Assembly: GCA_000388065.2 (NCBI GenBank)
Contig: KB932201.1
DNA: 64,000 nucleotides
Reading direction: 5' to 3' (one strand)
Source: Fonticula alba ATCC 38817
Taxonomy: Eukaryota; Protista; Nucleariida
Positions 22,897 to 61,389 of this stretch are shown here, piece by piece. A program made the translations under genes and the position numbers. The notes below the pieces were generated by a model that did no database searches, had not been told where the DNA came from, and worked only from the letters and a program-made list of their open reading frames with translations. The number at the start of each line of letters is the position of its first letter. Within the stretch, counting starts at the first letter, position 1.

Positions 22897-25800
22897 TCAC
22901 TGTCCCAGGAGAACAAGACGCAGGAGTGCCATGCGCACGTACAGACCGTAGCGCATCTGGCGGAAGTAGGCGGCACGCGGGTCGAGATCCACACGCGGGT
23001 CAATCTCATCCACGCGCGGGAGCGGATGCATGACGATCATGTTGTCCTTGGCCTGGGCAATGCGAGCCGGGGTGATGGCACAGCGGGCCAGATACTCGGC
23101 ATGGGCCTCGCGCAGCTGGGCCGCCCCCTGCTCGGTGTCGGTGGCAGCGAAGCGCTCCCGCTGCAGACGCGTGGCATACACCACATCCACCAGGGAAATG
23201 ACCTCATCCACCGAGCCATGGTGCTGCACCGACAGGAAGCCCTGGCCGTTGTGGCGCCGAGCACCGGCCTCCGCATCGGCAAGGACATACTCCGGCAGCT
23301 CCAGCCCCGGAGGGGCCACCAGGTGCACATGGACCCCATACAGGGCCAGCAGGCGGACCAGGCTATGCACGGTCCGGCCATTCAGCAAATCGCCCACGAA
23401 GGCCACCCGCAGGCCGCTCACCGTGCCAAGCTCCTCGCGGATGGTGAACAGGTCCAGGAAGGCCTGGGTCGGATGCTCGCCAATGCCATCGCCGGCATTG
23501 ATGACCGGGGCCCGGGCCACCGTGGCCGCGGCCTCGGCCACCGCACCGGCACCCGGGTGCCGCAGGACAATGGCATCGGCATAGGAGTCCAGCGTGCGCA
23601 CCGTGTCGGCCAGGGACTCGCCCTTCTGGACGGAGCTCCGCTCGACCGGGATGCTGACCACCGAGCCGCCCTGGCGCAGCATGGCCGCCTCGAAGGAGGC
23701 CGAAGTCCGAGTGGAGGGCTCATAGAAGACCGTGCAAAGGACCCGCCCGCGGAGGGCCTGCTCAGCGCCAGCCAGGGCCCCAGTCGGGCCGCGCTCCACG
23801 AGCTTGCGCATATCCTGCGCCAGCTCAAACAGCCGGTGCAGGGCAGACCGGTTCCAAGTCCCAACTGCCAGGACATGCCGCGAGGCCAGGGCGGTCTTGG
23901 CGGCGCTCGGGGCCGCCGGGCAGCTGGCAGGGGGAACAACGCCAGCGCCGGCCAGAACAACCGGGGCCGAGGCCGGGGCCGGGGCCGGGGCGGGCAGCTC
24001 CTCGCCCGGGGCCGCCTCAGTCACGACGGCACTGTGGTGGCCTGGCTGCTGCGACTGCGGCGGCGGCTGCTGCTGCTGCGACTGCTGCTCGGAGGTGGCG
24101 ACAGCCGGGAGGAGATCGGCATGCGCGCCGGCGGGCGCATCAGTGCCGTGCTTCTTGCCGAGGCCCGCCGGGGTGCCAGCCCCAGCCGGGGCATCGACGC
24201 CCAGGCCATCAGCGCGCGAGGCCGCCGCCAGGACGGCCGTCCGCAGGGTGCCAACATGGCGCCGGCCCGACAGAGCGGCCCCATCAAGCACCAGGGTCCC
24301 GGCCGAGGAGAGGCCCGACCGGACGCGGCTATGCTCCGGCAACTGGGTGAACACACGAGCCACCTGCCCGCGGAGAACACCGGACTTGAGGACATTGGCG
24401 GGGCTGCGGCCATTCAGAGTGGGCAGAGCCCCGGCCCCGGCGACGCCGGCCCGGTCCAGCTCCACCTCCAGCAGCAGGCCAGTCGGAGAAGCGGCCTGCC
24501 AGCCGGTCAGCGGGGCCGCCGGGGCACTGCCCACGGCCATGGTGGCGGCGGTTCCCGGAAGGCCCACAATCCGGGCCGGGTTGTGGCAGCACTTGGCGAT
24601 GACCTCCTCCAGGGTGAGAAGGCCCTCATGGACAGCGGTCAGGAGCAGGGGCAGGAAGTGCTCCTGCGGGTGGTACTCCGTCGTGCTCTGGCCGTGGTCG
24701 GCATCGGCCTCCGCCCCAGCCGGCCGGGAGGGGCCGGGAGTGGAGGAGACATCGGCGAAGGGCGACGAGCCGGGCTGGATGACATCCACCAGGGCAATGT
24801 TCTTCCAAAGGTCACCAGCCTCCGGGCCGAAGAAAAGGTCCTCCGCGCTGACGTCACAGGTGACGGTCGCCACGCCGGCGGCCCGGGTGGCCGCGATCAG
24901 GCGCAGATCGGCCACCGAGGCCACGCCGGTGACATGCACTGGCCGGCGGCACACGCCCGCCGCCAGGAGCAGCCAGGCACCGAGCTCCGGGCCCGAGGCA
25001 GCCAAAACCAAAGCCCGGCCATCGGCGCCCTGCTGCAGGAGCTTCTGCGCCCGGGCCAGGGCGTCGGCCGTCGTGGGGAAGGGCTGCCGCAGGACCGCAG
25101 CCAGCAGGGGAGCCGCCGCCGCCGCGGCCAGGCCAGCACCGAGGGCCCCCACCAAACCGTGGTCCACCGGCAGCGGGGTCTCCGTGGCGGCCAGGGCCCC
25201 GGCCAAACCGGCGCCCAGCTCCTCCGGCAGGGCTCCCAAATCGATGCCAACAAAGCCCAAGCCCGACCGAAGAGACGCCTCGGCATAGGCGCCCACACGG
25301 GCGGCCGCTTCGGTGACCGTGGCCGGCATACCGGCCGACGCCGGGGGAGCCAGCGCCAGATCCACCAGAGCCGGCATCAGGGCCGTCTCGGCCGAGGAGA
25401 GCACATCGCAGGCGCCCACACGCACCGGCCGGGTGGCGGCCAGCGAGTCGCCGCTGCCGTCCAGGACCACCGGCAGAGCACGACGATCAGCCTTGGCAAG
25501 GGCATCAATGAAGAGCTTGGCGCACTTGACATTGGTGATCAGCGGCACGGAGAAGTCCACGGCCAGACGCCGGCTCAGGTAGCCAGCCGACACGTAGTTG
25601 GCCGGCCGGCGGAAGCTGTTCTTCGAGGGGAGGTTGATGTAGAGGTCGATCTGCTTCGAGGCCAGGGCATTGGCCAGGCTGTACTCATCACGCCGAGGGG
25701 TGGACGTGCCGGCGGTGCCGGAGGCCGCCAGGGCCGCCAGGTTGCTGCTCGAGGAGGATGGGCTGATGGGCGGGCTGTTGGCGGAGGAGCCCCCGCCACC

Positions 25801-28800
25801 GGCCGCCGGGGCCGGGGCCGGGGCACTGTCCTCGGAAATCTGCTCCAGGAAGCCCACCTCCACGCCGTTGGACGCCAGGAAGTCCGCCGTGCCCGGAGTG
25901 GCAAAGAGCCGGTAGCCCAGGGTGGCCAGCTTGCGGATGGCCGGCAGCAATTCCGACTTCTCGGCATACGACCCGATGGAAATGAGGACATTGCGAGCGG
26001 GCAGCCGGAAGCCGGTGGCCTCCAGGGCCTTGAGGTAGGCCTCATGGTGGGTGCGCCCGAAGCAGGCCACCTCACCGGTGGAGGCCATCTCCACGCCCAG
26101 CACCGGGTCGGCGCCGGACAGCCGGGAGAAGGAGAACTGCGGGACCTTGACCGCGACCACCGGACCGGAGCCCGACCCCGGGGTCGGGGTCGGGGCCGGG
26201 TAGGCGGTCACCGGCAGGCCGACCATGGCCCGGGTGGCCATCTCGATGAGGTCCACCCCGGTGACCTTCGAATCGAAGGGCATCGACCGAGAGGCACGCA
26301 GGTTGCACTCGATCACCTGAATGCGACGGTCCTTGGCGATGAACTGGATGTTGAAGGGGCCGGTGATGTGGAGCTCGCGGCAAATGAGCCCGGTGGCCTG
26401 GACAATCTTGTCGGTGGTTTCCTGGTCCAGGTCCTGCGGGGGCAGGACGAGGGTCGCATCGCCGGAGTGCACACCGGCATTTTCCACATGCTCGGAAACG
26501 ACATGCATGATGAGCTCACCCCCGCGGCCGACCGCATTCACCTCGATCTCCTTGGCGCCCTCGATGAACTTGGTCACAACCACCGGGTGCTCCGGCGAAA
26601 TGGAAGCCGCCTTGCCAAGGTACGATTCCAGATCGGCCTCCGTAAAGACCACATTCATGGCGGCGCCCGAGAGGACGTAACTCGGCCGGACCAGGACCGG
26701 GTAGGTGACCGCACGGCAGAAGCTCCGCGCATCATCGAAGGAGGCCAGCTCCCGCCAGGCCGGTTGGTCGACGTCGATCTTGTCCAGCATGCGGGAGAAC
26801 TTGTAGCGGTTCTCCGCGCAGTCGATGGACTCCGGCGACGTGCCGAGCACCCGGACCCCCTGCCGGTGCAGGCCGAGGGCAATCAAATTCGGCGTCTGGC
26901 CGCCCATGCTGATGACCACCCCCTGGGAGGACTGCAGGTCGTAGACATCCATCACGGTCTCGGTGGTGATGTTCTCGAAGTACAGGCGATCCGCCTCGTC
27001 GTAGTCCGTGGACACGGTCTCCGGGTTGTAGTTGATCATGACCGTGCGGAAGCCAGTCTCGCGCAGGGTCCGGATGCAGCGAACCGCACACCAGTCGAAC
27101 TCCACCGAGCTGCCGATGCGGTAGACACCGGACCCGAGGACGATGATGCCGCGATCCTCGAAGGCCACATCATCCTCGGTGGCATGGTATGTCAGGTAGA
27201 AGTAATTGGCGCGCGAGCCATCCAGACCGGCCACCGTGTCAATCTGCTTGACGAAGGGCCGGACGCCGCAATCAAGGCGCCGGCGCCGGACGGCCATCTC
27301 CGTAGACCGGAGGGCCCGGGCGATCTGCCCATCGGAGAAGCCCAGCTGCTTGGCACGGCGCAAGTGCATGGGGCTGATGTCGGCCGGGGTTTCGGCGGCC
27401 CCGGCCCCGGCGGCCAGGGCCTGGAGAGCCTTGTCGGCGGCCACGATGCGCGCCATCTTGCTGAGGAACCACCGGTCGATCTTGGTCAGCTCCCAGATGC
27501 GCTCGATCGAGTAGCCCGCATGCAGGCCATTGGCCAGGGCAAACAGCCGAGCGTCGGTGGGGATGCCGATGTTCTCGTCGGACGCCTCGAGGACGGTGTT
27601 CTGCAATCCGGAGCAGTGGGGCGGGGGCGGGGGCGGGGGNNNNNNNNNNNNNNNNNNNNNNNNNNNNNNNNNNNGGGGGGGGCATAGTGGGAGGGGAGAG
27701 AAGCGAAGACGGGCCATGACATACCGCCTCGAAGCCATGGAAGGAGTTGTCCACCGCGCGGATGGCCTTCTGCAGGGCCTCCTCGAAGGTCCGGCCAATG
27801 GCCATCACCTCGCCGACGGACTTCATAGCCGAGGCAATGCGGTTGGACACGCGCGTGAACTTGCGCAAATCCCACCGAGGGACCTTGACCACGCAGTAAT
27901 CCAGGGCCGGCTCGAAGCAGAGAGTGGTCGGGGTCTCGGTAACACGGTTGACAATCTCCGGCAGGGGGATGTTCAGGGCCAGCTTGGCCGCCACAAAGGC
28001 CAGCGGGTAGCCGGTGGCCTTGGAGGCCAGGGCCGAGGACCGTGACAGGCGGGCATTCACCTCGATGATGCAGTACTCATCGGTGGCCGGGTTGACGGCG
28101 TACTGGATGTTGCACTCGCCAACCACCCCCAGGTGCCGGACCACGCTCAGGGCGGTGGACCGGAGCCGGCGGTTGTCCGCATCGGTCAGGGTCATGGTCG
28201 GGGCCACGACAATCGAGTCGCCGGTGTGCACACCCAGCGGGTCGACATTCTCCATGTTGCACACGGTCACACAGTTGTCCGCGCAATCGCGCACCACCTC
28301 ATACTCGATCTCCTTCCAGCCCTGCATGGACCGTTCGATGAGCACCTGCGGCGCCACGGCGAAGGCCTTGGTGCAAAGGTCCACCAGCTCCGCCTCGGTA
28401 TGGGCAAACCCGGACCCAAGCCCACCCAGGGCAAAGGCCGCGCGCACGATCAGCGGGTAGCCAATGCGGTTGGCCGCGTCGATGGCCTCCTCCATGGAGG
28501 TGGCCGGCGAGCTCTCGGCGCACGACTCGCCAATCTCCTCCATGGCCTTGGCGAAGAGCTCGCGATCCTCGGTCAGGATGACCGTTTCGATGGGCGTCCC
28601 CAGCACTTGGACGCCGAGCTCCTTCAGCTCCTGGTGCAGCTCGATGCCGACGTTGAGGGCGGTCTGCCCGCCGAAGGACACCGAAATGCCTGTGTTCGGA
28701 GGGAGGGAAGAGAGAGGGGAGAGGGTCGGCCCGCCCCGAGAAGCGAGGACGAGTACAGAGGAAGGGTCGTGAGCGTGGGGACACACACGGGCGACAGTGC

Positions 28801-30993
28801 CCGGGAGGGCTGCTGGGGGAGGAAGGGCCGGGGCCATTCGGGACAAAGAGGGGGAAGAAGGAAAAGGCCAGACATACCATCCGGGCGCTCATACTCGATG
28901 ACCTTGCGCACATACTCGGCGTTGATCGGCAGGAAGTACACCTTGTCGGCCAGCCCGCGGGAGGTCTGCACAGTGGCGATGTTCGGGTTGATGAGAATCA
29001 CCCGGATGCCCTCCTCCTTGAAGGCCTTGATGGCTTGCGAGCCGGAGTAGTCGAACTCGCCGGCCTGGCCGATGGAGAGACCGCCGGACCCGAGGAGAAG
29101 GATCTTGCGCGGGCGCAGTCGGGCCGGGACCGCGGCATTGGCGGCCGCCGGCGAGGGGGCAGCCAGGGGGCGCATTGGGCGATCCTCCCCCCCGAGGGAG
29201 GAGATGTCCAGCAGGTCACGCGCGGCCTCGAGGAAGCGATCGAACAGGAAATCCGTGTCCGACGGGCCGGGCCGGCCTTCCGGGTGGAACTGCACCGAGA
29301 AGTGGGGCCGGCTGCGCGAGGCCACACCCTCGCAGGTGTGATCATTGGCATTGGCGAACAGCTGGTCCCAGGCGCCGGAGGCCTCGAGCGACTCGAAGTC
29401 CACGGCCACGCCGTGGTTCTGTGGGGGTGCGCGGCGGCGGTGGAGGCAGCAGGGTGGACCGGGGCGAAACGTGTGAGCGGGGAAAAAAAGCAAGGGCAAA
29501 TCTCTGGAAGGTGGGGTAGAGGGGGGGGGGGGGGGCATGAAATGGACACACCTGGGCCGTGATATAGCAGCGCTGGGTGAGCGGGTCCCGCGAGGGGACA
29601 TTCGGCGCGCGGCGAGCCTGGGCCAGGGCAGTCAGCGACCCCCCGGCTGCCAGAGCCAGCAGGTGGTGGCCAAGGCCGATGCCGAAAACCGGCTTCGGCC
29701 AGCGGGCCAGGAGGACCGCCAGCCGGGCAATGGTCCCGGCACAGGGGTGCTCGGAGGCGGAAAACCCGGCGGAAGACGGGTCCACCGGACCACTGGTCAC
29801 CAGAACCGCGTCCACCGGGCCGACAGTGGATGGGGCAGCCTCGCCAGCAGCATCGATGCCGAAGCTGGCGTCGGAGCCCGGGGCCACGACGGGGGCGGGA
29901 GCGGCCAAAGCGTCAGGCACCCAGGCGCCGGCGGGGCCGGCCGGGTCCTCCAGCCCCAGGGCCGTCAGAATGTCGAAGTTCCACGGCACAACGACAACCT
30001 CGGCGCCACGGTTGGTCAGAGCGCGGATTTGCGCATGCTTCAGGCCCATGTCAAGGGCCAGGACGCGCAGCGGACGCTTGCCATCCGTCGCCGGGGCGGC
30101 CGTCGACGGGCTGGAAGCACCAGCCCGGGCAACCGGGCCGGTCGGCCGGAAGAGCCGGGGCGCCTTGATCGAGGCTACACGCGCATATCAGGGGGGGGAG
30201 GGGGCAGGGACACGGCGATTCACAGGGAGATGGCATTTGTCAGTTGGCGAAATCCCGGTATGGCAGTCAAGAGAAGAGCCAGGCGGCGGCGGAGGAGGAG
30301 GAGGCGGCGGCGGCGGCGAAGAAGAAGAAGGCACACACCCTCGGCAACCAGGTTCCGTCCGGTGAAGGGGGCGCCCCATGTCATGCCGGCAACGACGGCC
30401 GCCGGGCCGGAGGCGCGAAGCTCGGCCGCCACACGGGCGGCCTCCTCGCCAATGAGGATCCGCGCCCACAGGTGGCCGGGTCCGGTGAAGCGGCTAATGC
30501 GCCGGGTCAGGGCACGGGTGTCCACACCGCAGATGGCAGGCACGCCCTCCCGAGCAAGCCAGGCGCCCAGGGAGTCGGCCGCACGCCAGTGGGAGTAGTC
30601 GGCCCCGGCGCCGGCGTCCGAGCCGACAACCACGGCCGTTGCCCGGGCCCGGGCGGACTCGCGATGCCGGGCCAGGCCATTGGCGTCGGCCTCATAGGAG
30701 GCGCTCGGCACACCGGCGGCACCGGGCATCGGGTGGGTCAGGACCAAAACATGGCCCCCGTGCGAGGGATCGGTGATGGACTCGATGTGGCCGACCGGGC
30801 CGGCGAGGACGGTCGCCAGGCCGGTGGCGCCGGCCGCCGCGCCAAAGGACCGGCCCACCAGCGGGGTACCGCCGTCGCTGAGAACAAGCAGGGCCAGCGG
30901 GAGGGCATCCTGCTCGTCGTCCACAGTCAGGGCCGGGGCATTCGACTCGAGGAAAGCCTCCGCACCGGGGAAGGTGTACTCGGGGGCCGTCAT
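22897..30993 (-). CDS. URA2: URA2/CAD-type multifunctional pyrimidine protein: degenerate GATase - CPS - pseudo-DHOase - ATCase (~2495 aa)
   Basis: Exons 30993..30339, 30174..29552, 29418..28878, 28689..27725 and 27600..22897, all phases consistent. CPS motifs: [67 protein letters not shown]. ATCase motifs: [35 protein letters not shown]. Confidence 0.97.
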
Positions 30994-32379
30994 GTTTGGT
31001 GTAGAGAGGGAGGGAGGTGTGGTGTAGAGTGTGCGCCTGACGTCACGAACAGGGGGGAGAGGGGGGAGGGGTGAGGAGGCCGGACAAACGGCGTGTATGC
31101 ATGTGGGGCGGACACAGCCACAGAAGGGGGAAAGAGAACAGCAGGGGGACATGTGTGTGCCAAGAAAGAGGCGCACCTCAGCAAGGGAGCGCGGGCTGGG
31201 ACAGCGGCGGGCGTGGCGCGCGCGGGTCTCTCCGGATCGGGGGTCAGGGAAGGGGGGAGGGGTCTTTGTTCTCACGGGAAAGGGAGGTCAAAAGGAGGAG
31301 AGGAGGGAAGGGGGGGGGGGGATATGCGCGTGTCGGTCTTGTCGGAGTTGTGCGCCGTAAAAAGGGAGGGTCTCCTTGTGCGGGCGAACTACTGAAAAGA
31401 GAACATCCAAGATTGCGACGCAGAGTCTCCTTTTATACCGGCCTGTATCGCCACTTGGGGAGGGAAGCCGAGGGACAGGGGTGCCCCCCCGGTCCTCCAG
31501 GCTTCGTGCCACGTTTGCACGCGTGTCAGGTCGCGCTTCCTCCCCCGGGGGAGGGAGGGCACAGGCGGCATGCCCGCTGGAGTGCAAACGCGCCCCCCCT
31601 CTCCGCCTTTTGGGTTGGGCCCGATCCGCAGAGACTAATGCCCCGACATGGGGCCACACCAGGGAGGCCTGCCCAAGTACAGGGTGAAAGGCGCACGAAT
31701 GCGTTCCTGTCCTGTCTTGTCTGTAAGTGTGTGGAGAAAAAGCAAGCGAGGATGACATGACAAAGAGAGAGAGAGAGGGACCGAGAACGGAGTGTAGCCG
31801 CGTGGAAGGAGGGAGTCCGTGTGTTGAGACGCAGCCTCTCGGGGGGGGGGGGGGAGGGGGGGACACGCTGCCCCGGGGACGGGGTGCCCACATCGTGAAA
31901 AAAAAAAAAAAGGAGGGACACATAGGATAAACGGCCACCCTCGCAGTCCCGGACGATGGGGAAAACAGTGGCTCAAGTGGGGCGCCACACGGGCCCCGGG
32001 GCAGGGAGCCACCCACAGGCAACCCCGGATGAGTCGGGGTCCCCCTGGGCCGGCTGCCAGGATGTCGGGCAGCCGCCCCCCTCCCCTCCAGGCTGGTGCC
32101 CTTCCACGGCCGCCGGGGACCATGCGGCCCCCGGGGGCAGAGGCGGGCCCCGAATCCGGCACATACCAACACTGCCCACGGACCACGCCCTCGGGCACGC
32201 GGTTGGCATGGCTTTGGTGGCGTGACTGGGCGCCCCGGGCGTGATGCTCCACATGAGCAGCGCTCGCGCGGCCGCCGGCGGCCCAGATGCCTCGCGAGTG
32301 ATCGGCATGGCCCCCCTTCTATTTTGTCGTCGGGCCCAGAAAAAAAAAAAACAACGACAACCTGAGGAAGAAACAGCCG

Positions 32380-36343: not shown

Positions 36344-38100
36344 GGCGATGGGGCGACCAACACCCACGGAGGCGAGAGCAAGCGGGAATGTGGATGTGGG
36401 AGGGGGAGGGAGGAAGAAGAGGGGCGCGGCCGGGGGGGGGGGGCGAGAAGGGGAGCCCTGCGCGCCGCAGGGCCCCCCGCCGGGGCGGGGTTTTAGAGAC
36501 CTGCCAGAAGATGCGACCACATGCGCCCGCGCGTGCCGGGTGGCGACGCCTCACCAGCGCCCAACAGGCAGCTCGAGGGGCAAGAGCTGCGGCCCCTCTC
36601 TCAAGCAAGGGTGTATTTGTGAGTTTGTCCATGTGCGCGAGAGGGGGGAGAGGATGGGAAGGAGGGGGGAGGGGGAGGGAGGGAGGAAGGAGGAAATAAG
36701 GGGGCGGGGAGGGCAAGTGGGAGAGAGAGAGAGGTCGTGGAACTGGCCCCGTTTGCCCGAAGGGACTTGGATAGAACATGGTCCGGAAAAAAGGCCCCGA
36801 TCCGGTCCCAAGCACGAAGCGCAGCAACAGCCCGCGCCCGGTCACATCCCCCCCCCCCCCACTCAGACCTCAGCCCAGACTCTCCATTTCGCTCATCGCG
36901 CTACATCATCCCCCCCCCCCCACGGAGGGGCCGAGAATGCTGGCCCTGCCGGATTCGGTTAAAGGACCGGACGAGCAGGGGAATGCCCCGCACGGGCAAT
37001 GGGGGCGGGGGAATGCCGCGGCCGCAACTCCCAGGCCCAGTGGGGTGTGGGGCGGGGCAGAGCGGGGCACGGGCCAGATCGGTTCTTCTGCCTGCGGACC
37101 CCTGCACGCGTGAAAGGCCACGCCGGCTTGACGCCGCTCTCCGGCGTCCCCTCCAGCCTCCCTCCGGCGCGCGAGAAGGGGGGCAGGGCCGGGCGGAGGT
37201 GGCGGCGGCCCCTCGCCATATGGGGGGTTGATGGCAGAGCGGTCACGGGCCCGGGCTCGCCTGCCTGGCTGCGCCTGGTCTTGGCCGGGATTTCCCCTGC
37301 CGCCTGTCTCGACCGGCTCTCGGGCTGCGGGCCAAAGGCAACAAATGCGCCCTCCGCGAGCAAGCCCGGGTGCGTGTATTTCATTCTAGGGCAATAATGT
37401 GTCGAGGGCATTGTGTGTTGTGTGTACTGTGTTTTGTATGGGTGTGAGCGAGGGCGCATTATCGACCGCATGAATGAGCGGATATGTTGTTATTTGGGGT
37501 CAGACTTGTCCTCTGCAGAGTCGGGCCGATGAAAGACGGCCAGCGCAGGGCAACCCGGCCCGGGGCTCGGGGCCTTTATTCGCCAATATTTATTTCTCAT
37601 TTGATGTGCGTCGTGCTCACGCCCCTTTTCCACCCGACCCGCTCGATCACACTCATTCGCACGCATGGATGATATCTGCCCCCCCNNNNNNNNNNNNNNN
37701 NNNNNNNNNNNNNNNNNNNNNNNNNNNNNNNNNNNNNNNNNNNNNNNNNNNNNNNNNNNNNNNNNNNNNNNNNNNNNNNNNNNNNNNNNNNNNNNNNNNN
37801 NNNNNNNNNNNNNNNNNNNNNNNNNNNNNNNNNNNNNNNNNNNNNNNNNNNNNNNNNNNNNNNNNNNNNNNNNNNNNNNNNNNNNNNNNNNNNNNNNNNN
37901 NNNNNNNNNNNNNNNNNNNNNNNNNNNNNNNNNNNNNNNNNNNNNNNNNNNNNNNNNNNNNNNNNNNNNNNNNNNNNNNNNNNNNNNNNNNNNNNNNNNN
38001 NNNNNNNNNNNNNNNNNNNNNNNCCCCCCCCGGCCCCGTTGCGCCCCGTTGCGCCCCCCCCCTCTTCTTCTCGGCCTCCGACTCCTCTCCTCTCGCCAAA

Positions 38101-59964: not shown

Positions 59965-61389
59965 GGCGAAGAGCGGGGGTATGCGGGAGAAGGGGGAGCG
60001 GGGGGGGGGGGGAGACAAGGAGGGGGAGGCGGTCCGAGGTAGAGGCGGGGAGCGGAGCCCGGAGAGCAGGGAGGAAAGGGGAACCGAGGAAGGGGCGAAG
60101 GGGGCTAGCGGAGGGCCGGGCAAGGGTGGGTTGTGGGGCTATTTTTTTCAACCACCGGACCGTCTGCGGACCGAAAGGGGGGGCTCCGGCCCCGAGGAGA
60201 GGCCACCGGGGCCTGATTATGGCCCCCCCCCCTTCTCCCCCCGCGAAGGGGTTGAGAGATAAGAGGGAGGGAATGTACAAGAACCGGTGCGTGTACTGCC
60301 GCTGCACCCGCTTCGCAGAGATGGGGTGCCCCGAGCCTTGGCGAGGGGGCGAGATTCGGCCGGACCCAGATGCCGCGGGCCGCGGTAATAGCGCGGCCCC
60401 GGGGGCGGGGCGCAGGCTGGCTGGCGGAGACAACTTCGCCCGGCTTCTGGGGCCGCGACCCGGGGCTGCCCGGGGTGGGGAGGGGGGCCGATCAAACTCG
60501 CCCGGGCGTCGGCGCAAGGCAATTTCGCCCTGGGTGGGTCCGAAGTCGGGCGAGCCATAATTGTGTTCCCACATTTCAGCGACGCCGCGGGTAGAGACCA
60601 AGCTGCTGGACGGACCAGTGCCACCCCGCCTACCGATGCGGGTCCCCTGGAGGTGGTCTTGCCGTGTCTCGGGCGGCAGAGGGGTCGGGGGGCAGGGAGA
60701 AAGAACATGCGCCTGTTGGCTCGACTGCCAGCGCACTGGGTATCTGAGACGGCCCCCCCCCCCCCGCGCCGTGGCCTTTTGTGTTTGGACCCCCCGCCGC
60801 GCCGCGCNNNNNNNNNNNNNNNNNNNNNNNNNNNNNNNNNNNNNNNNNNNNNNNNNNNNNNNNNNNNNNNNNNNNNNNNNNNNNNNNNNNNNNNNNNNNN
60901 NNNNNNNNNNNNNNNNNNNNNNNNNNNNNNNNNNNNNNNNNNNNNNNNNNNNNNNNNNNNNNNNNNNNNNNNNNNNNNNNNNNNNNNNNNNNNNNNNNNN
61001 NNNNNNNNNNNNNNNNNNNNNNNNNNNNNNNNNNNNNNNNNNNNNNNNNNNNNNNNNNNNNNNNNNNNNNNNNNNNNNNNNNNNNNNNNNNNNNNNNNNN
61101 NNNNNNNNNNNNNNNNNNNNNNNNNNNNNNNNNNNNNNNNNNNNNNNNNNNNNNNNNNNNNNNNNNNNNNNNNNNNNNNNNNNNNNNNNNNNNNNNNNNN
61201 NNNNNNNNNNNNNNNNNNNNNNNNNNNNNNNNNNNNNNNNNNNNNNNNNNNNNNNNNNNNNNNNNNNNNNNNNNNNNNNNNNNNNNNNNNNNNNNNNNNN
61301 NNNNNNNNNNNNNNNNNNNNNNNNNNNNNNNNNNNNNNNNNNNNNNNNNNNNNNNNNNNNNNNNNNNNNNNNNNNNNNNNNNNNNNNNN

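Follow-up and report, generated by a model that had tools for sequence, protein, structure and literature searches.

A predicted pseudo-glutaminase domain, CPS1-like and structurally retained, in the URA2-type pyrimidine multienzyme of Fonticula alba

A 64,000-nt stretch of DNA (contig KB932201.1; hereafter, the window) from Fonticula alba, a sorocarpic amoeboid organism that comes from dung and is related to fungi, carries on its minus strand a URA2-like gene whose glutamine amidotransferase (GATase) domain is the subject of this analysis. The gene extends from the ATG at position 30993 to the stop codon at position 22897 and comprises five exons encoding 2495 amino acids. Introns 1 to 4 are 164, 133, 188, and 124 nt long, respectively, all with GT..AG borders and GTRTGT donors. 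The spliced translation exactly matched a deposited protein, likePyrABCN [Fonticula alba] (P0001). Pfam domains were found in the order carbamoyl phosphate synthetase (CPS) small chain, class-I GATase, two pre-ATP-grasp/ATP-grasp units, oligomerisation domain, MGS-like domain, and two matches to aspartate transcarbamoylase (ATCase). The best full-length matches were fungal URA2/pyrABCN proteins, with 45-50% identity. The Fonticula gene is an orthologue of fungal URA2, consisting of GATase, CPS, a degenerate dihydroorotase (DHOase)-like linker, and ATCase.

The Fonticula protein was aligned with 59 other full-length holomycotan URA2 proteins to give a family alignment of 60 sequences. An earlier note on this DNA had read the nucleophile elbow as FGIGLGHH, with GGC at 29675-29677 where Cys belongs and with the Gln changed to His, and the same reading was obtained here. 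Gly385, which is encoded by this GGC, stands at the position of Escherichia coli CarA Cys269, and His389 at that of Gln273. Among the relatives with a residue in these columns, the nucleophile position was occupied by Cys in 58 of 58 sequences and the +4 position by Gln in 58 of 58. Gln273 is said, from the work of Saeed-Kothe and Powers-Lee, to be one of two determinants of glutamine specificity. Alignment with E. coli CarA and CPS1, a comparison that the earlier note had proposed along with one against relatives, placed Gly385 at Cys269 and showed that the triad His and Glu are kept; these belong to His471-Pro-Glu473, aligned to His353 and Glu355 of CarA. The changed loop TSGPVDP, the eroded N-domain motif, and the surviving HPE and NHG, all of which the note had pointed out, were also located, together with a changed GNRGxNIP motif (Table 1). 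The changes in the N-domain motif were E59L, V61T, F62V, T64A, Y69H, Y78H, Q81H, N92A, and Y93A. The equivalents of Gly241, Leu270, Asn311, His312, and Gly313 (E. coli CarA numbering) are kept, as is the Lys of the D.G.K motif. Measured against a competent class-I triad GATase, the domain has lost the Cys of the elbow and the glutamine-binding and oxyanion elements and has retained the His and Glu. Since Gly occupies the nucleophile position, no glutamyl-thioester can form. Judging from these residues, the glutaminase of Fonticula URA2 is almost certainly dead.

Table 1. Coordinates of the URA2-like gene of Fonticula alba, its domains, and its diagnostic motifs in the window.
Feature	Position	Strand	Basis
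URA2-like gene, exons 1 to 5 (including stop)	30993-30339, 30174-29552, 29418-28878, 28689-27725, 27600-22897	-	Spliced translation
CPS small-chain N-terminal domain, residues 36-167, strongly eroded	30493..30888	-	Pfam PF00988, 80.9 bits
Eroded N-domain motif, 37 residues	30712..30822	-	Alignment to family consensus
Class-I GATase-like domain, residues ~250-495, split by intron 2	29212..30082	-	Pfam PF00117, weak, 36.9 + 42.9 bits
Ala/Pro/Gly-rich insertion, residues 287-339 (53 residues), Fonticula-specific, in GATase-like domain	29813..29971	-	Without counterpart in relatives
TSGPVDP for SNGPGDP, oxyanion/glutamine pocket loop	29777..29797	-	Alignment
Nucleophile elbow FGIGLGHH (family FGICLGHQ)	29663..29686	-	Sequence and alignments
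ARRAPNVP for GNRGxNIP	29594..29617	-	Alignment
NHG, kept (within QNHG)	29410..29418	-	Sequence
HPE, triad His and Glu kept	29278..29286	-	Alignment
CPS synthetase: two ATP-grasp halves, oligomerisation, MGS-like; well conserved	25465..29100	-	Pfam PF25596, PF02786 (272.6, 101.2 bits), PF02787, PF02142
Degenerate DHOase-like linker, as in fungal URA2	23995..25437	-	Without Pfam amidohydrolase match
ATCase domain, conserved	22900..23880	-	Pfam PF02729, 147.4 bits; PF00185, 107.4 bits

Logan contigs from four runs were compared with positions 27700-31100 of the window to examine the authenticity of the Gly codon. A contig from a DNA run of 2025 bearing another organism label (X4, record 14, 29531-29929) and one from soil metagenome DNA (X5, record 21, 29597-29775) were both identical to the reference at the Gly codon. 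X4 and X5 share six differences from the reference, at positions 29899, 29907, 30640, 30685, 30835, and 30886. Because these six shared sites differ from the reference, X4 and X5 represent another Fonticula strain and are independent of the reference data. Further differences, mostly intronic, were seen in X4 or X5 singly. A sequencing error at the Gly codon was ruled out, since the contigs of two independent DNA samples agree; the view of the earlier note that the many concordant substitutions do not reflect a single base error thus holds. Contigs from RNA libraries, which show the gene to be expressed, contained the joints 29418|29552 and 28689|28878, which are introns 2 and 3 exactly as modelled. 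These joints and the identity of the translation to P0001 bear out the intact reading frame and normal splicing that had been described for the gene.

The 53-residue insertion in the GATase-like domain was predicted to be disordered, with predicted local distance difference test (pLDDT) values of <50. That this insertion is an unannotated intron was ruled out, since it contains no donor-like site and the RNA-library contig covering 29833-30001 of exon 2 is unspliced.

In an unrooted tree, a second URA2 sequence, P0002, grouped with Fonticula against 58 fungi with a support of 1.0. P0002 is an intronless URA2 of 2138 amino acids from eukaryotic metagenome contigs (L001:3001-9417; ERZ27263088, SRR1955887); its source could be a hitherto unsampled lineage related to Fonticula or to nucleariids. 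It keeps every motif that is lost in the small-subunit region of Fonticula. Because this nearest relative retains all of the motifs, the loss of the glutaminase can be placed, on sequence grounds, on the Fonticula lineage itself. No closer relatives with the dead motif were found, the best cluster representative being 46% identical, and a search with residues 1-426, which was not exhaustive, returned nothing above 48%.

The extent of change was then compared among the domains. The mean identity of Fonticula to the 58 fungi was 44% in the N-domain and 47% in the GATase, whereas the corresponding values for P0002 were 61% and 66%. In the CPS halves, the values were 72-73% for Fonticula and 76-82% for P0002, and in ATCase, 58% and 63%, respectively. 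When invariant positions were defined as columns identical in all 59 other URA2 sequences, 10 of 34 were altered in the N-domain of Fonticula and 19 of 63 in the GATase, plus C385G and Q389H. On the other hand, the altered fraction was 17 of 243 and 13 of 218 in the two CPS halves (6-7%), 3 of 93 in ATCase, and 2 of 37 in the MGS-like domain. Control rows showed 0-4% alteration in the small-subunit, CPS-half, and ATCase columns. The CPS and ATCase motifs are therefore conserved, as the earlier note had stated, although not fully, with 93-97% of the invariant positions kept. The oligomerisation ("integrating") domain (residues 931-1069; approximately 26100-26900, minus strand) had 8 of 38 invariant positions altered, well above the ATP-grasp halves, and there may be a connection between these changes and those of the small-subunit region.

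With the topology fixed, the terminal branch of Fonticula measured 2.56 substitutions per site in the small-subunit part, 0.57 in CPS, and 0.83 in ATCase, which corresponds to 19% of the tree length in the small-subunit part versus 9% in CPS and ATCase. Furthermore, a small-subunit alignment of 70 rows was made in which bacterial CarA, CAD, and CPS1-like sequences were also represented; of its 81 columns conserved at >=90%, Fonticula had lost 18. This loss (22%) was the highest of all rows; the median was 1.3%, and CPS1-like rows had lost 11%.

Residues 30-500 were modelled by AlphaFold2 with the 70-row alignment. The mean pLDDT was 86.7 and the predicted template modelling (pTM) score was 0.88, and low values were essentially confined to the insertion. 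An earlier model from a 10-row alignment was poor (pLDDT 59.7) and was replaced by the 70-row model. When the latter was searched with Foldseek, E. coli CarA was matched with a target-normalised template modelling (TM) score of 0.87, and a comparable match, with 30% identity, was obtained to the N-terminal part of human CPS1. The predicted fold leans on the family alignment and is thus supportive, not decisive. The differences between the strains were also considered. All four that fall in the structured part (codons 36, 53, 103, and 118) are synonymous, whereas both non-synonymous single-nucleotide polymorphisms (SNPs) fall in the insertion. Given that 27.9% of the possible changes are synonymous, four of four would be expected with P ~0.006 under neutrality. 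The predicted fold, the retained interface-type motifs, and the synonymous-only polymorphism point to the dead domain being a folded, constrained module, and not a decaying spacer. In this respect, the motifs, the constraint, and the predicted fold support the proposal of the earlier note that an intact CPS-ATCase retains a catalytically dead domain in a structural role.

The closest known counterpart of this arrangement is animal CPS1, in which the catalytic Cys is lost by a change to Ser, a loss that accounts for the inability of the human enzyme to use glutamine, the rest of the triad is kept, and ammonia is taken only from the surroundings (PMC4655335); the account of mammalian CPS1 given in the earlier note is documented there. 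Both proteins have a fused small-subunit-like moiety in which the glutaminase is dead, or predicted to be so, by loss of the Cys, while QNHG and the triad His and Glu (FHPE) remain, and no solved structure matched the Fonticula sequence better than CPS1 (E 2.6e-54). However, the Fonticula protein is not orthologous to CPS1; it groups with holomycotan URA2, carries ATCase, and belongs to pyrimidine synthesis, whereas CPS1 serves ureagenesis. In addition, the Cys is replaced by Gly and not by Ser, and the loss of conserved small-subunit columns noted above exceeds that in the CPS1-like rows. The likeness to CPS1 thus appears, from the sequences, to be convergent and not a matter of family membership. 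Fungal URA2/pyrABCN proteins, on the other hand, share with Fonticula the domain order, an apparently degenerate DHOase-like linker, and the 72-73% identity of the CPS halves, but the Cys and Gln kept in all 58 aligned relatives are lost in Fonticula.

The position replaced in Fonticula is the same as that in the Cys269 mutants of E. coli CarA (the structure 1C30 is C269S). According to Rubino, Nyunoya, and Lusty (1986), the holoenzyme of a Cys269 mutant reportedly loses glutamine-dependent activity and keeps NH3-dependent activity. These are laboratory point mutants, whereas Fonticula has many natural substitutions and the 53-residue insertion. Purified bacterial CarB works with ammonium, and CarB2 of Bacteroides thetaiotaomicron is proposed to be an ammonium-dependent CPS running on plentiful free ammonium (PMC8121099). 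CarB2 lacks any small subunit, unlike the Fonticula enzyme, which keeps a putatively dead one fused in cis.

Small subunits of the CarA type with Gly in place of Cys269 were also encountered elsewhere, in Sporosarcina, Thermosyntropha lipolytica, Rhabdomonas costata, and Rotaria socialis. They differ from the Fonticula domain in that most have also lost His353, which Fonticula keeps, and they belong to independent lineages. Among the best 150 cluster representatives matching residues 1-500, approximately 16 were CarA-type proteins with Gly or Ala at Cys269, most of them without His353. All eight of the CarA-type proteins that were scanned, one of them with Asn at Cys269, exceeded the NCBIfam cut-off for the "glutamine-hydrolyzing CPS small subunit". 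No published description of these putatively dead CarA-type small subunits was found.

In an uncultured Sporosarcina metagenome-assembled genome, Cys269 is replaced by Gly and His353 by Tyr in a CarA (P0180; L073:6001-7104) that is encoded beside an intact CarB. The operon is complete (pyrP-pyrB-pyrC-carA*-carB-pyrK-pyrD, where the asterisk marks this CarA) and recurs in two other runs (L003:3481-4584 and L004:804-1907), whereas Cys and His are kept at 79 other loci of Bacillales and Lactobacillales. From its sequence, the enzyme of this pyr operon is likely a natural ammonia-dependent bacterial pyrimidine CPS. Eight further CarA-type proteins (P0265, P0196, P0177, P0254, P0153, P0175, P0205, and P0258) have the Cys269 to Gly change, and most of them lack His353. 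They include proteins of T. lipolytica (WP_073092557.1) and a Porphyromonadaceae metagenome-assembled genome (HBJ77229.1), a 43-member ENA cluster, and others, and the named ones are annotated as "glutamine-hydrolyzing". Among eukaryotes, Gly takes the place of the nucleophile in fragments of fused GATase-CPS proteins from the euglenid R. costata (P0137; EukProt EP00906_P003610) and the rotifer R. socialis (P0133; CAM4984383.1; L005:3791-8109); in both, the triad His is replaced, and the Glu mostly too. The putatively dead small subunits in these bacteria and eukaryotes are independent losses. Their occurrence makes an ammonia-dependent reading of the Fonticula enzyme more plausible and weakens any claim that Fonticula is unique.

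Based on these observations, the following model is proposed. With the thiol nucleophile changed to Gly, the glutamine-binding Gln to His, and the pocket loops altered, the domain can release no ammonia from glutamine. As animal CPS1 does, the Fonticula enzyme would keep the pseudo-glutaminase folded and in its docked position against the synthetase. The conserved synthetase would make carbamoyl phosphate from bicarbonate, two ATP, and free cellular NH3, and the fused ATCase would consume the carbamoyl phosphate formed. A listing of sorocarpic protists from dung includes Fonticula alba, in keeping with an ammonia-rich setting, and the bacterivorous lifestyle that the earlier note had invoked is right for this organism. 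In a dung bacterivore catabolising protein, ammonia would plausibly be abundant enough to make the glutaminase dispensable. We consider it fairly probable that the Fonticula protein is a pyrimidine CPS that uses ammonia and keeps its glutaminase-dead domain as a structural element, in convergence with CPS1. The Fonticula genome may hold no other glutaminase or CPS. No literature on CPS or pyrimidine synthesis in Fonticula, or on CAD/URA2 with a dead glutaminase, was found among open-access papers.

Several points weigh against this model. The Gly codon and the joint of exons 1 and 2 lie outside the coverage of the RNA contigs, and the synonymous-SNP test comprises four sites only. Canonical CPS II has a poor Km for ammonia, and efficient use of ammonia may need adaptations. 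Moreover, Fonticula evolves fast in all domains, the terminal branch of the CPS part being 3.8 times that of its sister, and part of the small-subunit erosion is therefore general; by the branch-length measure, the domain-specific excess of change appears to be roughly two-fold.

Other explanations of the altered domain were weighed against these data. The many N runs of the window, one of which lies in intron 4, might raise the suspicion of an artefact, whether an error of base calling or assembly or a copy that is a pseudogene. Yet two independent samples, which can be told from the reference elsewhere, agree with it at the codon, at least 18 concordant substitutions are spread over approximately 450 codons, the 2495-codon frame is intact across four introns, and there are spliced RNA contigs; such an artefact is extremely improbable. 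The synthetase itself could also have become redundant, with ATCase fed by an arginine-specific CPS of the CPA1/CPA2 type or by phosphorolysis of citrulline from the arginine-deiminase route, and with the N-terminal two-thirds of the protein drifting. Each of the two carbamoyl-phosphate pools of yeast can partly stand in for the other, and the alteration of 8 of 38 invariant positions in the oligomerisation domain would suit a drifting enzyme. However, the ATP-grasp halves retain 93-94% of the positions invariant in the 59 relatives, ATCase retains 97%, and the strong Pfam scores of the ATP-grasp halves would be unexpected for an idle enzyme of 1100 residues, so that we regard redundancy of the synthetase as unlikely.

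A different possibility, already raised in the earlier note as a trans-acting glutaminase, is that glutamine is still the donor but is split outside the fused protein, by a stand-alone subunit of the CarA/CPA1 type or some other glutaminase, from which the synthetase receives the ammonia. This has about as low a probability as a redundant synthetase: the fused dead domain with its predicted CarA fold presumably fills the docking site of the small subunit, no small subunit labelled Fonticula was among the matches to the domain in the non-exhaustive search, and ammonia freed into the cytosol would amount to the ammonia-dependent model. The retained HPE, QNHG, and Lys of the D.G.K motif, together with the synonymous-only polymorphism of the structured part, would also be expected if the domain now served to sense a ligand or to regulate the enzyme, with glutamine or another metabolite tuning CPS, for instance, and Cys269 mutants of E. 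coli still bind glutamine. Nevertheless, Fonticula has changes at the equivalent of Gln273, a determinant of glutamine specificity, and in both the SNGPGDP and the GNRG loop, and the residues retained in Fonticula are also kept in CPS1, for which no glutamine sensing is known; a sensor, too, is improbable.

The DHOase-like segment of approximately 480 residues aligned to the fungal linker, which in URA2 is an inactive DHOase, with 26% identity. No amidohydrolase Pfam match was obtained in the linker of Fonticula, P0002, or the fungal relatives. Because P0002 also lacks the match, the fungal-type pseudo-DHOase seems to predate Fungi. Two of the four domains of Fonticula URA2 would then be pseudo-enzyme domains. 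A second Fonticula-specific low-complexity insertion, rich in Ala/Pro/Gly/Ser and approximately 45 residues long, splits the allosteric MGS-like domain (approximately 25500-25950, minus strand), and the Pfam match is stretched there to 140 residues for a 94-position profile. The window has a G+C content of 64% and many runs of N, at 27640-27674 (in intron 4) and at eleven other places including 1705-2544, 37686-38023, and 60808-61389. The URA2 coding sequence is free of such runs, and the run in intron 4 has C-rich flanks; these runs may be masked or unresolved low-complexity tracts. No relevant glutaminase or ammonium-transport neighbours were seen, the ten flanking open reading frames having given a single Pfam match (D123).

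To our knowledge, textbooks attribute the use of free ammonia only to the animal urea-cycle CPS1. In reviews, every CPS except CPS1 is stated to use glutamine (PMC4655335), and all eubacterial CPSs studied so far are described as glutamine dependent (PMC8121099). The best-supported reading of the Fonticula locus is that a CPS1-like pseudo-glutaminase has arisen independently in a pyrimidine URA2. If this is true, ammonia dependence of a CPS would have originated independently a second time, here within a multienzyme of the CAD/URA2 type. The parallels in the Sporosarcina pyr operon, Thermosyntropha, the Porphyromonadaceae genome, the euglenid, and the rotifer suggest that dead CPS glutaminases may be recurrent and hidden by automatic annotation as "glutamine-hydrolyzing".

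More tentatively, and with the odds against it, URA2 could be one symptom of a genome-wide change in which several glutamine amidotransferases of Fonticula are glutaminase-less and run on free ammonia, and ammonia-dependent pyrimidine CPSs annotated as "glutamine-hydrolysing" could perhaps form a recurrent unrecognised class in bacteria and eukaryotes. If the change were genome-wide, the synthesis of nucleotides and cofactors in this dung bacterivore would bypass glutamine as the nitrogen carrier. The Fonticula enzyme would in any case offer a natural experiment on the roles of the small subunit beyond glutamine hydrolysis, on the path by which external ammonia reaches the carboxyphosphate site, and on how the nitrogen economy affects the decay of enzymes in ammonia-rich niches.

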